The position numbers and the translations under genes are program-made. This document shows, one piece after another, positions 6,922 to 58,213 of a stretch of 64,000 nt of DNA (the stretch's first letter is position 1; each line of letters opens with the position of its first letter). Under the pieces are notes generated by a model. That model worked only from the letters and a program-made list of their open reading frames with translations, did not search any database and was not told the DNA's origin. The stretch lies in sequence record MZ475895.1, one strand, 5' to 3'.

Positions 6922-7743
6922 TTAGTCGCCCTCTGCACTATACCAGAAGTCCCAGCCGACAACGTTTGTGCCAGTAGACTTAATGGTGAAGCCACCCAAC
7001 AGGGCGTTCTCGTTCATCGCACTTGTACCATCCAGATTATATAGCTGGAAGGTCCGAGATTGATTGGTTGCAGTATTGACGAACGTGATTTGCACAGACA
7101 CACAGCGGTTGATGAACGGGCTGTTGAAGATAACGTTAATCGTATCAGTAGTGGATGTATTCACCACACGACCAAAGTTCTTCGTGTAACCAGTGTTCAG
7201 ATCGCGGTCGCTACCAATCCATGCGTTAGGAATAGGCTGACCTGTGATAGGGTCAAGCGCTTGTGCTACGAGATACTCATTGATAGCAGCATCACGTCCT
7301 GCATTACCAGTAGGACCAGTTGGGCCTGTAGGACCCACACCACCTGTGTTACCTGTAGCGCCGACAGGCCCTGTGTTACCAGTAGGACCTTGACGGCCAC
7401 GCTGACCACGAGGGCCAGGACAACCGTCTTCACCATCAGCACCATCACGACCATCAGCACCAGGCAGGCCACGTAGACCGTCTTTACCCTGCTTACCTTC
7501 CTTGCCTGACTTCAACTGGTCAGCAGTAGGCAGGCCAGGCACTGTGCTCTGACTACCGTCTGGCCATACAATAGTAAGCGTACCACTCACTGGGTCGAAC
7601 TGTACGCCTTGTGATCCCGGAATGTTAGCTGCCTCTGTCGGGTCAATAAACGCAACAGAGTTCAGCGTTTGTTTGCCGAGAACTTTACCGACAGGAAATG
7701 CACCGCCATCGATTAGTCCCGGACTTATTTTCTGCAAAGACAT
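6922..7743 (-). CDS. Collagen-like fibre protein with C-terminal lectin-like beta domain
   Basis: 273 aa. About 24 Gly-X-Y triplets. C-terminal 'INVIFNSPFINRCVSVQIT' is typical of phage fibre tip/H-type-lectin-like domains. Confidence 0.75.
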   Translation of the reverse strand: MSLQKISPGLIDGGAFPVGKVLGKQTLNSVAFIDPTEAANIPGSQGVQFDPVSGTLTIVWPDGSQSTVPGLPTADQLKSGKEGKQGKDGLRGLPGADGRDGADGEDGCPGPRGQRGRQGPTGNTGPVGATGNTGGVGPTGPTGPTGNAGRDAAINEYLVAQALDPITGQPIPNAWIGSDRDLNTGYTKNFGRVVNTSTTDTINVIFNSPFINRCVSVQITFVNTATNQSRTFQLYNLDGTSAMNENALLGGFTIKSTGTNVVGWDFWYSAEGD

Positions 7744-17822: not shown

Positions 17823-17849
17823 AAGAACTCCTTGAATATTTACGTTCTT

Positions 17850-23895: not shown

Positions 23896-24314
23896 TATTG
23901 GGCCCTCATGGCAAACGTAACTGACTGCGTGTTTTCCAGTTTAGGACAACGCCAGTTGATGGTACACACATAGGTCTGATCGTACTGAGCGCTCATACCA
24001 CACGTTGTCCGTACATCGGTAACGTCATCAGTCAACCCGTTCGCTGGGTCTTCTAGTGCGATACGCATGTAGGTTGCAATCCACTGCGCGGTCTTATCAT
24101 CAAACGGTTCGAACAGGTATTGATAGACGTCAGCACCAAACGCTTCACGCCATTTACGTGAACGCTTTCTCGTACCAACAACCATCAGAATCTTTTGGAC
24201 GATGCTATCCATGTTCTGGACGTTATCACGAGGCTCAAGATGAATCCATACGTTAACGTCACAGTAAACACGCTCGGAGACAGGCACGTCAATCAAACGA
24301 ATAGCGATAGCCAT
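23895..24314 (-). CDS. Baseplate wedge / sheath initiator (gp25-like)
   Basis: 139 aa. SIVQKILMVVGTRKRSRKWREAFGADVYQYLFEP matches the gp25/GPW pattern. Confidence 0.8.
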   Translation of the reverse strand: MAIAIRLIDVPVSERVYCDVNVWIHLEPRDNVQNMDSIVQKILMVVGTRKRSRKWREAFGADVYQYLFEPFDDKTAQWIATYMRIALEDPANGLTDDVTDVRTTCGMSAQYDQTYVCTINWRCPKLENTQSVTFAMRAQ

Positions 24315-24604
24315 TAGCCAAATCTCACGTTGTTGCTGCCATTGGATGCGGTGTCATTGCACGTATTAGGGTCACCATTGCGTTGAGCAGGCTTACCGTT
24401 AACACGCACAGTCGAACTGGAGATAGCGTAGCCCACATGTGGTGGTTTCTTAGGTGCTGAGTGGGGTTGATACGCATCACCCTGACGCACGCTTCCCTTA
24501 CCATTGATCATGACATTGGCTGAGGCTTGTACTGCGACAACAGGATAAAACCCATTGTGTCCTGTGGACAGGTCTGCGCCTAACCGAATTGCTTTCTGGC
24601 CCAT
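24314..24604 (-). CDS. PAAR-repeat spike tip protein
   Basis: 96 aa. AIRLGADLSTGH, VMINGKGSVRQGD, VRVNGKPAQRNGD, with His/Cys metal ligands. Confidence 0.9.
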   Translation of the reverse strand: MGQKAIRLGADLSTGHNGFYPVVAVQASANVMINGKGSVRQGDAYQPHSAPKKPPHVGYAISSSTVRVNGKPAQRNGDPNTCNDTASNGSNNVRFG

Positions 24605-24627
24605 TGTTATTCTCCTCTGTTAGGCAC

Positions 24628-24635
24628 AAATTAGC
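24628..24635 (-). promoter_or_regulatory. GCTAATTT candidate late-promoter motif
   Basis: Exact octamer after a terminator, 24 nt upstream of the PAAR ATG. Confidence 0.6.
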
Positions 24636-24653
24636 TTTATACGCGACAGAAAC

Positions 24654-24680
24654 AAAAACGGGCAGCCTAATGGCCACCCG
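24654..24680 (-). terminator. Rho-independent terminator
   Basis: CGGGTGGC-CATTAG-GCTGCCCG followed by TTTTT on the minus strand. Confidence 0.75.
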
Positions 24681-24703
24681 GTTCTTGCGCTTGGATTTTG
24701 TCG

Positions 24704-24865
24704 CTATTCCCACATCCCTCGAACGTGTGCCACTGTGCCCTCAAGCACGTAGCCGGAATGAATAGAGGAAGGATAGACTACCTGAGGTCCTTCCTGTAAC
24801 GATAACAACCGACCAAGCATTGCGATTGCTATCAGCGACAATATGAGCAGTACAATCGTCATCAT
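24704..24865 (-). CDS. 53-aa small membrane protein (not in ORF track)
   Basis: Manual translation MMTIVLLILSLIAIAMLGRLLSLQEGPQVVYPSSIHSGYVLEGTVAHVRGMWE*. One N-terminal TM helix. Followed by a terminator. Confidence 0.55.
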   Translation of the reverse strand: MMTIVLLILSLIAIAMLGRLLSLQEGPQVVYPSSIHSGYVLEGTVAHVRGMWE

Positions 24866-24869
24866 ATCG

Positions 24870-25875
24870 TCGTTACTCTTCTTTTGGCCGAACGGTACTG
24901 CATGGTTTGATCAGATTACTCCGCTGCCTATCGTCCACGATCACTTAGGTTTCAGTTTCTTCATCTCTTTACCGCCTGCGCTGCGGTCAAGCCGCACACC
25001 CTGCACACGGGTCTAACACAAAGGGGCGGAAGAACCTTTATGCTCGAAACATGCACATGGCGAAGGAGGCCACGCATCGGTGATCTGCTGGTGTTAACAC
25101 ACTTTTAAGGCCTTTCGTTTGTGCACCATTCAAGAGACAGGGCCACCAGCTAGTGATCTCTTTAAGGTATCGCACTGACTTGTGAACAAGTCACGGGTTG
25201 AAAACTATACACTTCCATATGCGCATCGGGAGAAACGCATAAGGCTGATGCACAGCTTTGACTAAGAAGGATTGCGCCCGTCGCCCGACTTCACTTGGGT
25301 ATCGACAATCGCTCTCTCTTACTCCCTTGAGTACAGCGCAAGGAACACTGAGTCAATGAGTAGTCTGCGGGTGTTTCTCACTAGAGGGTGAAAGCCTCTT
25401 AGATTCTTTATTCTGTACAGCACCTTAGTGGACTGAATCGCCCGCTGGAGCATCCAATAAGGCCCTCTCGGTTAGGCACCTTACTGTACAGAAAACCCGG
25501 GGAGTACGTTACCATATAAAACGACTCTCCCCAATGCATACCAGAGCGACTTGATATGCATCAGGCAGTGAACGTTTGCAGAAGTTCAACTGCTTTGCTT
25601 CCCGCTGAACTAGAGCCACACCGTTGAGTCTACGGTCCACAGTAGTTACATGCCTAGAGGATATTGCCTTGGAGTTTATGTCCTATGGAATAACCGGGCT
25701 CGTCGCGTCGGTGCCACAGCAATATTCTATCATGTGGTGCTGGGGTTGTTCCCCACATTATGCGATTGCTCGCAACCAGCTGGAGGTCTGCGTCCGATGA
25801 AAAGAATAACTAAGACGCAGATGAGCTTTTCAGAAAAAACGGCACACCAAGAAAATTGGCTAAACTTAGTGTGCG
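24870..25875. ncRNA. Candidate large structured non-coding RNA or leader (~1 kb), family unassigned
   Basis: No credible ORF of 60 aa or more in an otherwise densely coding window. More than 15 stem-loops read by eye, e.g. 25087-25150, 25176-25193, 25411-25493, 25499-25532, 25658-25729, 25788-25821. Orientation unresolved. Confidence 0.5.
25834..25875 (-). terminator. Probable terminator after 25922..27685
   Basis: GCACA...CCAA-TTTTC-TTGG-TGTGC stem followed by CG and TTTTTT on the minus strand. Confidence 0.55.
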
Positions 25876-25921
25876 TATAGATATTACTATCTACAATTTT
25901 TATTTACAGATTTTTCTGAGA

Positions 25922-27685
25922 TTAGAATGCCTTACGTTCAACATTCGAATAGTACGTTTCGTACGGCTCAGAATACAACTCAGGACCGCGCTGCGCACGC
26001 ACAGTAACATAGCCTGTATGGCGATTCACTGCGGTGATTTCGATAGTAGGCTGTTTAGGCTTAATCGTGCCGTAGATAGGCGCGTTCATCGTTGGTGGGT
26101 CTGTCTGAATCTTGTTTACAGATTGCAGTGCAGCACCAGACAGCGTAGGGAACTTAAAGCGCAATTCAGCACGCGTGCGGCCTGTAGCGATCTTGATGCT
26201 ACCAGCAGGCAGTTCAACGCCGCTTTGTTTCAGGTAAGCAGCGATGCGACGACCAATACCCGCTAATTGGTTCTTAGCGACAGGGTCCATCAGACCATCG
26301 AAGCTAATGGCTGATTGCGGTTGATTCACTGACAGATGCATACCCGTGTTGAAGTAGCCTTCTGCGAGAAAGCGATACAACTGACGAACAATCTCAGGAG
26401 TGTTCTGTGCAATCACAGGCGTCAACAACTCAGGTGGATTGGTCTTCATCGGGTCGCGGTATTCAACCTGACCTTGTGAGTAACCCATACTGATATGCTT
26501 AACACGAGGATAAGCAGACTGCAACGAACCAGTAGAGCGAATCAGGATAGAGCCAGACTTCGCTTGATCATACAGTTCATCGCTGGTGGTTGTTGAGAAC
26601 AGGAAGTAGTCGGTAGGCACAGCCATACGACCGATAGCTTCGATTGCTTTCGTCTGCACTTCTTTGATCGTCGAACCAAACACTACGCGGCTACGATTCG
26701 GCTGAGCAGTAGACACAGCGAAGAATGCGCCGTACACTACCTTCTGGTCTTTGACGATAGGCGAAGCAGACTTAACCTTTTGACCGCCTGGCAGTGGAGG
26801 TAGCTTAACGCCCACCAGCTTGCCTTTAGTGATTGCTTTGTTCGCAACAACAGGCTTCAAGGAGGACAGCAGCTTGTTCAACTCAGACCCGTCAAGAATC
26901 TTCTCCAGCGGAACAACGAGGTTCTGCGGCAGATAGTGTTTCTTGCGCAACGTATAGATAACGGTGTCTTTCTTGATCTGTAGAGGAGTAGCCATGTTAC
27001 GACCAGCTTGACCAACAGGCTGGAACGTATTCGCTTTGTCCTGACCAACAGAGCCGAACTCTTTGTCAAACACAGACTGACCGATGATGTTCGCTGCACG
27101 CAGATGGCCACGCACGTTGAACACAATCTTAGGTTCATCTTTCATGCGCAACTCATAGCGGTCACGCGTCAGATAGACCATGCTGAACTTGTCGCCTTTC
27201 TCCAGCTCAAGGTCATACTCATCGTTAGCGTCATCGATAACAACTTTCTTACCCTGATAGGTAGCGTACACGCGAGCGGCAGCAGACTCCGAAGCAATCT
27301 TCAACGCTACGCCACAGTTAGACAGCGCAGTAGCATAGTTGGTTGCGTGGAACAGCGCGTCGTTCGATTCCGTGATAGCGACTTCTTTACCGCGTACGCC
27401 CAGCGCAAGGTGGATAGCGCTAGAGCTGGACATGAACACAGTGTGACCTGTATCTTCATGCTTACCAGCAAAGGACATACCACTAACACGCGAAATAGAC
27501 AGCGCATTTAGGTGTGGAGTAGTGAACGTATCACCCGCAGCAAAGTCAAAGATTTCACCTTGACGCCACGCGTAACCGATGTTGTTTGAACTCAAGCCAA
27601 CAAACGCATCACCCACCTGTCGAATCGTAGTAGGGATAATGCTGAGATCGCGAACGATCTGATTTTGTTTCTGAATGATGGTCAT
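25922..27685 (-). CDS. Hypothetical (probable virion/head-internal) protein
   Basis: 587 aa. Contains the domain shared with 40379, 48981 and 56214 (YATYQG...KGDKFS...EPKIVF). Confidence 0.7.
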   Translation of the reverse strand: MTIIQKQNQIVRDLSIIPTTIRQVGDAFVGLSSNNIGYAWRQGEIFDFAAGDTFTTPHLNALSISRVSGMSFAGKHEDTGHTVFMSSSSAIHLALGVRGKEVAITESNDALFHATNYATALSNCGVALKIASESAAARVYATYQGKKVVIDDANDEYDLELEKGDKFSMVYLTRDRYELRMKDEPKIVFNVRGHLRAANIIGQSVFDKEFGSVGQDKANTFQPVGQAGRNMATPLQIKKDTVIYTLRKKHYLPQNLVVPLEKILDGSELNKLLSSLKPVVANKAITKGKLVGVKLPPLPGGQKVKSASPIVKDQKVVYGAFFAVSTAQPNRSRVVFGSTIKEVQTKAIEAIGRMAVPTDYFLFSTTTSDELYDQAKSGSILIRSTGSLQSAYPRVKHISMGYSQGQVEYRDPMKTNPPELLTPVIAQNTPEIVRQLYRFLAEGYFNTGMHLSVNQPQSAISFDGLMDPVAKNQLAGIGRRIAAYLKQSGVELPAGSIKIATGRTRAELRFKFPTLSGAALQSVNKIQTDPPTMNAPIYGTIKPKQPTIEITAVNRHTGYVTVRAQRGPELYSEPYETYYSNVERKAF

Positions 27686-58193: not shown

Positions 58194-58201
58194 AAATTAG
58201 C
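58194..58201 (-). promoter_or_regulatory. GCTAATTT candidate late-promoter motif
   Basis: Exact octamer after a hairpin, 34 nt upstream of the ATG at 58160. Confidence 0.6.
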
Positions 58202-58213
58202 TTTTTGAGGGAA

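Follow-up and report, generated by a model that had tools for sequence, protein, structure and literature searches.

A conserved, structured non-coding locus of about one kilobase next to the PAAR gene in jumbo phages of Erwinia and Dickeya

Background

To our knowledge, few large and intricately folded RNAs of bacteria and phages are known beyond ribosomal RNA, RNase P and introns. ROOL RNA is about 580 nucleotides (nt) long; OLE, a chromosomal RNA of Bacillota extremophiles, measures about 600 nt and has the dedicated partners OapA-C. Structured RNA also precedes the open reading frame (ORF) of a small hydrophobic peptide in type I toxin mRNAs (e.g., hok), where it can sequester the ribosome-binding site (RBS); such leaders comprise hundreds of nucleotides and are accompanied by an antisense RNA. 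The present study concerns a gap without annotated genes, adjacent to the PAAR gene, in a 64,000-nt stretch of sequence record MZ475895.1 (termed the window below). The locus is non-coding yet constrained, has its structure on the minus strand, is conserved across genera and matches no Rfam family; it probably encodes a structured non-coding RNA of about 1.0 kb, extending approximately from 25875 to 24866.

GOLLD is a giant RNA of phages and prophages with no known obligatory protein partner, and ROOL assembles into an octameric cage made solely of RNA, a working model of the capabilities of RNAs of this kind (PMC12286853). OLE is reported to be a ribonucleoprotein scaffold linked to membrane proteins (PMC12054373). 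The RNA proposed here resembles GOLLD in being phage-encoded, very large (GOLLD exceeds 800 nt), multi-domain, supported by covariation and rich in conserved unpaired nucleotides, and it resembles ROOL as a large ornate RNA of phages and prophages (PMC12286853). Like OLE, it would be a long and highly conserved structured non-coding RNA, here with a membrane peptide encoded directly downstream. No description of this RNA was found in the literature searched; the IMG/VR catalogue of 10,006 candidate viral structured RNAs (PMC10690425) may contain fragments of it.

An earlier note on this DNA had proposed a large phage RNA in the size class of GOLLD and ROOL or, alternatively, a giant regulatory leader, in either case insulated by two terminators and of undecided orientation. 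As checks it named a search of Rfam, BLASTN of the gap across relatives, comparison of both strands with shuffled sequences and an analysis of covariation; small ORFs tiling the region would speak against it.

Results and discussion

A non-coding gap under constraint

Positions 24600-25950 of the window are 100% identical (BLASTN) to pEa_SNUABM_14 and pEa_SNUABM_7, two jumbo myophages of Erwinia that belong to the genus Snuvirus and have genomes of about 265 kb. No coding sequence is annotated between 24605 and 25921 in the identical RefSeq genome and, as the earlier note had observed, this is the largest ORF-poor stretch of the window, in which the remaining intergenic gaps do not exceed 244 nt. 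By BLASTN, 46 phage records contain a match to the gap, of which 44 belong to Erwinia phages and two to Dickeya phages. All of the Alexandravirus and Sasquatchvirus relatives examined retain a gap of 1.27-1.46 kb at the same site, among them vB_EamM_Alexandra, Dickeya phage AD1, vB_EamM_Y3 and many SNUABM isolates. In a number of annotations small ORFs have been called within it; these are scattered, lie on either strand and vary in position between relatives.

We aligned 15 distinct genomes from the 3' end of the upstream gene, which codes for a 587-residue protein, through the gap and into PAAR. The three-base periodicity of column entropy amounts to 19-38 in both flanking genes versus 0.1-2.7 throughout the gap. 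Tiled small ORFs, sought in the form of such codon periodicity, are thus not apparent anywhere across it. The mean entropy of the gap is 0.45-0.72, similar to the gene average, and third codon positions reach about 1.0. The low entropy, taken together with the lack of codon periodicity, indicates that the gap is under purifying selection, and not as protein.

Compensatory changes and the coding strand of the RNA

The alignment displays a recurrent pattern of invariant blocks between hairpins, wherein the stem sequences vary by lineage and the pairing is maintained. Loops of the UUCG and GNRA types appear on the gene-sense strand. Consensus folding of the 15 sequences with RNAalifold in the sense direction yielded -293 kcal/mol and 317 pairs, 139 of them with compensatory double changes, as opposed to -167 kcal/mol, 231 pairs and 85 such changes in the antisense direction, and the sense structure contains 682 G-U cells versus 48 A-C cells. 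By these measures the strand, which the earlier note had left open, is the minus strand. After trimming of a 32-nt motif and a small ORF (both described below), the covariance term of the sense gap is 25.7 and its double-change pairs number 111, compared with 5.6 and 19 for a control of the same length from the adjacent coding gene in the same genomes and with about 1 and 12-21 for column-shuffled alignments.

Covariance models, designated R1, R2 and R3, were built for three domains of the RNA, and all members were realigned to them. Together the models comprise 205 pairs in 30 helices; 126 of the pairs are changed on both sides among the relatives, with 94-96% of the cells canonical. When the 3' partners are moved by 1-3 columns (slid control), pairing falls to 31-46%. 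None of 500 shuffles reached the observed values in any of the three domains, but these counts are not probabilities, since each alignment had been fitted to its model and its sequences come from relatives. Evidence that the covariation signal is real comes from the slid controls and from the coding control.

Folding of the window sequence alone gives a z-score of -2.2 for the 996-nt minus strand (none of 20 shuffled sequences was equally stable), -0.6 for the plus strand and +0.2 for a coding control. Among sliding windows of 200 nt, only 25400-25599 and those that bear terminators stand out. Because this single-sequence signal is modest, the case for a structure that exceeds chance is a comparative one. 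Within Snuvirus, whose genomes are 98.5-99% identical, substitutions are too few and the variable parts too poorly registered to be informative, with the exception of an A>G change at 25867 in SNUABM_13, SNUABM_34 and SNUABM_45, which converts an A-U pair of the first hairpin (P1) to G-U.

The distance from the P1 hairpin to the start of the small ORF is about 1010 nt. Large ornate non-coding RNAs are delimited by a length above 500 nt and by their non-coding nature, together with helices backed by compensatory changes and long invariant single-stranded blocks, and each of these properties was found here. The comparative evidence therefore argues for a conserved structured RNA of the size class that had been proposed, though one that is homologous to neither GOLLD nor ROOL.

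Hairpins, domains and a tandem duplication

The features of the locus are collected in Table 1. P1 and a second hairpin, P2, precede domain 1 in every lineage, constant in shape and unrelated in sequence. P1 is followed by a U-run only in the clade of the window and in one metagenomic relative, L069. Model R1 scores 193 bits in the window (E 1e-58); among 20 sequences, 96.5% of the domain 1 cells are canonical and 45 pairs are double-changed, and the slid controls pair at 33-41%. For domain 2, R2 scores 171 bits, with 93.8% of the cells canonical and 38 double-changed pairs; for domain 3, R3 scores 200 bits, with 95.4% and 43 pairs. The motif UCUGUAA is present at the 5' end of the RNA and again within domain 1.

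Model R3 also matches the domain 2 region of the window (25271-25472, E 5e-9), and it finds domain 2 in every genome, with E values from about 1e-4 to 1e-14, the latter in L069. Domains 2 and 3 have in common a 5' helix whose loop contains AGCGG, the block CCGCAGA, the stretch AGG-GUAA-GAGAGA and, on the 3' side, a hairpin with a loop of the GUGAUG type. The matches in every genome, combined with these common features, identify the two domains as tandem paralogues; both the domains and the duplication are real. A search for internal repeats at the DNA level returned short, chance-like repeats only, the duplication being visible solely by covariance model.

Nearly all of the stems listed in the earlier note exist, and most map to helices that covary in relatives. 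The stem TCTGCGTC/GACGCAGA is hairpin P2; TGCGA-TTGC-TCGCA, AGGATATTGC/GCAATATTCT and ATGCATA/TATGCAT are helices of domain 1; and TATGCG/CGCATA as well as GATTG/CAATC with CCCGA/TTGGG belong to domain 2. GCTGGTG/CACCAGC corresponds to a domain 3 helix (GCGGU/ACCGC) that competes with the pairing used in R3. Other stems are confined to the clade of the window: TTCTGTACAG/CTGTACAGAA extends a conserved helix, AGAGG..CCTCT is an inserted hairpin, and GGAACAC/GTGTTTC has no equivalent in relatives.

The inserted hairpin, AGAGG-GUGAAAG-CCUCU at 25383-25399 (plus coordinates), is found in Snuvirus only and adds a minus-strand stem-loop between conserved blocks; a terminator scan flags the same hairpin on the plus strand. 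In domain 3, the invariant blocks GCAGAUCACCGAUG and CCUCCUUCGC (about 25050-25085, minus strand) resemble GAUCACCUCCUUA, the 3' end of 16S rRNA which contains the anti-Shine-Dalgarno region. A weak plus-strand hit to the Rfam "L31 leader" corresponds to the complement of this anti-Shine-Dalgarno-like block.

Table 1. Coordinates of the RNA elements, signals and flanking genes in the window
Feature	Position	Strand	Characteristics
PAAR gene (tail-spike)	24314-24604	minus	Downstream neighbour of the gap
Late-promoter-like motif, AAGCTAATTT	24628..24637	minus	Invariant in relatives; would serve the PAAR/baseplate operon; outside the RNA
Rho-independent terminator	24650..24685	minus	Predicted end of the RNA and small-ORF unit; 9-bp stem with 7 G-C pairs, then T-run
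Small ORF, 53 residues	24704..24865	minus	N-terminal transmembrane helix, C-terminal AHVRGMWE; unannotated in the identical RefSeq genome
3' tail of the RNA, 5' untranslated region of the small ORF	24866..24918	minus	From alignment and sequence
Domain 3	24919..25182	minus	264 nt, 11 helices, 70 modelled pairs
Domain 2	25183..25470	minus	About 288 nt, 10 helices, 64 modelled pairs
Domain 1	25513..25817	minus	About 305 nt, 9 helices, 71 modelled pairs
5' stem-loop P2, UCUGCGUC / GACGCAGA	25779..25822	minus	Position conserved and sequence covarying in all lineages
5' stem-loop P1	25834..25875	minus	Hairpin of 10-13 bp in every lineage, with completely different stem sequence
32-nt motif, ATCTGTAAATAAAAATTGYAGATAGTAATATC	25880..25911	minus	Starts 10 nt past the stop of the 587-residue protein gene
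Gene for 587-residue hypothetical protein	25922..27685	minus	KMPT-N domain (Pfam PF20294, E 8e-20)

Putative signals at the ends of the unit

The 32-nt motif ahead of P1 is essentially invariant across three genera: of the 15 aligned relatives, 14 share it unchanged and Y3 differs by one substitution (position 13). At the Y position the window has T in place of C. The full motif occurs once in the window; as RNA it can fold into a hairpin of 8 bp that includes G-U pairs. A first copy follows an intrinsic terminator in Yoloswag, SNUABM_5 and a related metagenomic contig, where a second lies about 20-75 nt upstream of the start of the small ORF; this placement in distant relatives suggests a promoter. 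The motif may be regarded as a candidate promoter, the alternatives being an RNA hairpin or a processing site. Its core appears to resemble the late promoter of T4, TATAAATA. A scan of the region for sigma-70 promoters returned no sites, and by eye the motif is a weak sigma-70 match at best. A second copy of ATCTGTAAA is located at 26115-26123 (minus strand), inside the gene for the 587-residue protein and about 200 nt upstream of the invariant motif. In the Alexandraviruses this copy reads AATCTGTAAATAAGATTCAGACAGAC. It lies within the codons for the conserved peptide SVNKIQTD and may be a coding coincidence or an internal signal.

Of the two minus-strand terminators by which the unit was thought to be flanked, the downstream one (24659-24680) is confirmed and is conserved in all relatives, with G-C to G-U variation. 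The upstream one, at 25834-25875, is the RNA's own 5' hairpin: stem and U-run are present in the window, but relatives outside its clade, apart from L069, keep the hairpin without the U-run. Since this covarying P1 lies downstream of the invariant promoter-like motif, the unit is not insulated by two terminators. A terminator scan of the 24866-24918 segment, between the RNA and the small ORF, found no terminator-like site. The putative transcript would thus measure about 1.25 kb, with structured RNA of approximately 1.0 kb ahead of the small ORF.

The late-promoter motif that the earlier note placed next to the unit is presumably AAGCTAATTT, which stands just after the downstream terminator. 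This sequence, or TTGCTAATTT, is found on the minus strand at 24628-24637, at 58194-58203 and near 17840, each time a few nucleotides after an intrinsic terminator and 25-50 nt before the start codon of a structural gene. Judged by these positions, it is likely to be a late-promoter element of the phage group. In SNUABM_3, AD1 and SNUABM_33 an extra ORF of about 40 codons (125 nt), which the window does not have, lies between the late-promoter region and PAAR.

A small membrane-peptide ORF downstream of the RNA

Just beyond the segment that the earlier note had delimited (24870-25875), and before the terminator, lies an ORF of 53 codons into which the transcript very probably continues from the RNA. 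Among the 20 aligned family sequences, 17 have an ORF of 47-63 codons with the conserved transmembrane segment; in AD1, Y3 and mg3825 it was missed by the anchor search. Homologues are annotated sporadically, in Yoloswag, SNUABM_5, SNUABM_17 and SNUABM_35, and the C-terminal AHVRGMWE of the window's ORF recurs in those of Yoloswag and SNUABM_5. In most relatives the small ORF has an AGGAG RBS.

The RNA lies directly upstream of the small ORF only in the branch of Snuvirus, Alexandravirus and Sasquatchvirus. In JA11 and JA29 the RNA region is followed by an ORF of 103 codons, and in Yoloswag and SNUABM_5 at least three ORFs and the second copy of the 32-nt motif intervene. A cis-acting leader should have the same regulated gene directly downstream in all members; across these lineages the downstream gene differs.

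Relation to known RNA families

An Rfam 15 cmscan of the entire 64-kb window at the gathering threshold returned no matches, to GOLLD and ROOL or to any other family, and with E values up to 10 the gap yields two chance hits only, to the L31 leader and sR17. ARAGORN detected neither a tRNA nor a tmRNA in the window. These results agree with the earlier note, which had recognised no landmarks of introns, RNase P, tmRNA or tRNA. Membership in GOLLD, which frequently lies beside tRNA genes or tRNA islands, was rejected in view of the missing match to its covariance model (conserved 3' domain) and the lack of a tRNA in the window, and membership in ROOL likewise for want of a model match. A group I or group II intron was rejected on the Rfam result and on the completeness of the 587-residue protein gene, the small ORF and PAAR; flanked by complete genes, the element is not an intron. 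The housekeeping RNAs (RNase P, tmRNA, 6S and others) were discarded because Rfam gave no match and ARAGORN no tmRNA.

Unlike GOLLD, the RNA belongs to jumbo myophages of Enterobacterales, occupies a fixed site between the KMPT-N gene and the PAAR gene, includes one domain in tandem duplicate and has a small ORF behind it; no evidence of intermolecular kissing loops was found. A search of four alignments for palindromic 4- and 6-mers that vary between sequences returned none, a test outside of which invariant palindromes (GAUC, AGCU) fall. ROOL differs in genomic context and host range, and the present RNA is about twice as long. As for OLE, there is no model match and the neighbours are unrelated. 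In comparison with hok-type systems, the RNA is of about 1 kb, an antisense promoter or antitoxin RNA was not seen, and in sister lineages the RNA and the small ORF are not coupled. The kind, i.e., a large ornate phage RNA, has precedents; the family is unrelated to them and longer, with other hosts, another context and another architecture.

Mode of action and alternative explanations

Transcription would proceed in the direction of the neighbouring genes, starting either at the 32-nt motif or by read-through from the gene for the 587-residue protein. The transcript would pass through the small ORF and stop at the strong terminator at 24659-24680, after which the PAAR/baseplate operon would start from its own late promoter. 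The RNA is predicted to fold into the two 5' hairpins and three independently folding multi-helix domains, the second and third derived by tandem duplication. It would most likely act in trans during early-to-middle infection and could serve as a scaffold for a ribonucleoprotein or for a higher-order RNA assembly, in the manner of GOLLD and ROOL (PMC12286853). On our analysis such a trans-acting role is somewhat favoured. The density of covarying helices, the invariant unpaired blocks, the duplication and the conservation across genera, in which the neighbouring proteins are 42-100% identical, suggest that the folded shape is itself the product. In sister branches, moreover, the RNA region and the small ORF form separate units, with their own copies of the motif and with ORFs between them, which fits an independent RNA gene.

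Several points weigh against this interpretation. The shuffle controls overstate significance, since they derive from alignments of 15-20 related sequences, and the thermodynamic signal from the window sequence by itself (z -2.2) is modest. Several details of the helices are uncertain, and domain 3 has alternative pairings. Covarying palindromic loops, through which the intermolecular contacts of GOLLD and OLE had become apparent, were not found. If the U-run after P1 in the window's clade brought about efficient termination, it would conflict with the 32-nt motif as promoter of the RNA; this promoter is itself a prediction, as are both ends of the RNA and any processing. Finally, two features would also fit a cis-acting leader: in the window's lineage no terminator separates the RNA from the adjoining small ORF, and domain 3 includes the invariant, anti-Shine-Dalgarno-like CCUCCUU block, which could pair with the AGGAG RBS.

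The last two observations bear on the proposal of a giant cis-regulatory 5' leader that would control translation or stability of the small-ORF mRNA, e.g., by occluding the RBS with CCUCCUU in a type I toxin-like manner. In the branch of the window the RNA forms the 5' part of the small-ORF mRNA and contains this block, both of which fit a leader. In Snuvirus, Alexandravirus and Sasquatchvirus the RNA enters the ORF with no terminator in between, the product is a conserved hydrophobic peptide of 47-63 residues, domain 3 contains the invariant CCUCCUUCGC, and the small ORF of most relatives has an AGGAG RBS. Yet in phages of the Yoloswag, SNUABM_5 and JA types a separate copy of the motif stands directly upstream of the small ORF, which one to several ORFs separate from the region after the 587-residue protein gene. 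Some 200 covarying pairs in three domains, with many invariant unpaired blocks, go far beyond known leaders, and PAAR is insulated by the strong terminator and its own promoter. We therefore consider a leader, which the earlier note had offered as its alternative, rather unlikely: the abutment on which it depends holds in the window's lineage, whereas the two are separate units in related ones. A ribozyme or processed catalytic RNA, i.e., a new self-cleaving or self-splicing type or the RNA component of an enzyme, appears improbable. Its size, domain organisation and many invariant unpaired nucleotides would be typical of large catalytic RNAs, and UCUGUAA recurs at the 5' end and in domain 1; but Rfam matches no group I or II intron, RNase P or ribozyme family, the flanking genes are complete and separate, with no exons to join, and the position is fixed in all relatives, unlike that of a mobile intron.

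Two further explanations dispense with an RNA product altogether. The locus is the largest intergenic region of the window and lies at the boundary between nucleotide-metabolism and late baseplate operons, where a DNA-level element (replication origin, packaging or recombination site) might reside, its inverted repeats acting as DNA. This is very improbable in light of the strand asymmetry of the pairing, with its predominance of G-U over A-C cells, and of the far better fold of the sense strand; in addition, the G+C content equals the genome average, and neither an AT-rich stretch nor iterons nor a clear skew switch was seen in the gap. The origin-of-replication reading was rejected on the strength of the asymmetry, the average G+C content and the lack of iterons. 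Decayed or overlooked coding sequence, whether a pseudogene or an array of small ORFs, is extremely improbable. Several minus-strand ORFs of 34-45 codons do tile the region in the window, and annotators of some relatives placed scattered small ORFs here, but the gap has no codon periodicity while the flanking genes are strongly periodic, the called ORFs change strand and position between relatives, and the region is maintained by compensatory pair changes. The pseudogene reading was rejected for these three reasons.

A bolder version of the trans-acting RNA, namely a new RNA class of more than 1 kb in this jumbo phage lineage of Enterobacterales, with a duplicated core and an RNA-based function of its own (a self-assembling architecture, a ribozyme or a scaffold), is a tentative possibility to which we give rather less than even weight.

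Distribution among phages

The full RNA is found in Snuvirus, Alexandravirus and Sasquatchvirus and in three divergent metagenomic lineages; homologues of the 587-residue protein were found in 57 records. The three lineages were added by pattern and protein-anchored scans of IMG/VR and metagenomes, which gave none outside the phage group. The 21 contigs retrieved by a two-block pattern scan of IMG/VR were discarded as chance matches, and nhmmer revealed no further similarity. Two contigs from one sample (IMGVR_UViG_3300013825_000009 and IMGVR_UViG_3300013825_000007) overlap exactly over 105 nt inside the RNA and jointly contain a complete copy. The overlap indicates that they are adjacent pieces of one divergent jumbo-phage genome, in which the homologue of the 587-residue protein is 63% identical. 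The single hit in the bacterial genome collection, a 34.7-kb contig of a "Raoultibacter sp." metagenome-assembled genome (JAVWLC010000001.1), contains a full domain 3 at 7310-7592 (255 bits) and is probably a misbinned Alexandravirus-like phage contig rather than actinobacterial.

In the Salmondvirus-type lineage, where the homologue of the 587-residue protein is 42% identical, R1 matches at full length in two metagenomic contigs (E 3e-9 and 7e-8), R3 matches JA11 and JA29 (E 2e-7 and 2e-6), and a domain 2 hairpin matches all four sequences (E about 4e-6). These matches show that the lineage carries a shorter homologue, about 0.7 kb in length and with one domain only of the 2/3 type; in the alignment of the four sequences, sense folds better than antisense. 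The Yoloswag- and SNUABM_5-type phages have 620-710 unannotated nt at the same site. As one hairpin and short blocks are all that is recognisable there, homology in this branch is unproven.

Genomic context

The genes around the gap are all on the minus strand. On the upstream side are those for the 587-residue protein, a 144-residue protein, thymidylate kinase and an MmcB-like nuclease, and on the downstream side those for PAAR, a gp25-like protein, a 487-residue protein, which carries a baseplate wedge annotation in related phages, and a tail protein. These neighbours place the locus at the junction of a nucleotide-metabolism operon and a late baseplate operon. The gene for the 587-residue protein directly precedes the RNA in all lineages examined. 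KMPT-N is the sole Pfam match of this protein; a profile search of PDB sequences found no relative of solved structure, and its AlphaFold2 model (mean predicted local distance difference test score of 50.7) is too poor for a fold search. The constant upstream neighbour thus offers no functional clue for the RNA.

Conclusions

The analysis corrects the annotation of about 50 deposited jumbo-phage genomes, in which the region is empty or filled with spurious small ORFs and many of which miss the membrane peptide. The element occupies a constant site in phages of Erwinia and Dickeya that have been sequenced and can be cultivated, which makes the transcript, the structure and the phenotype of a knockout directly testable. 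OLE, GOLLD, ROOL and raiA have each opened new RNA biology, most recently RNA-only nanocages, and the element described here exceeds all of them in length. It is among the largest structured phage RNAs to which no function has been assigned, and, if it proves to have a function of its own, it would be the largest such phage RNA apart from introns.

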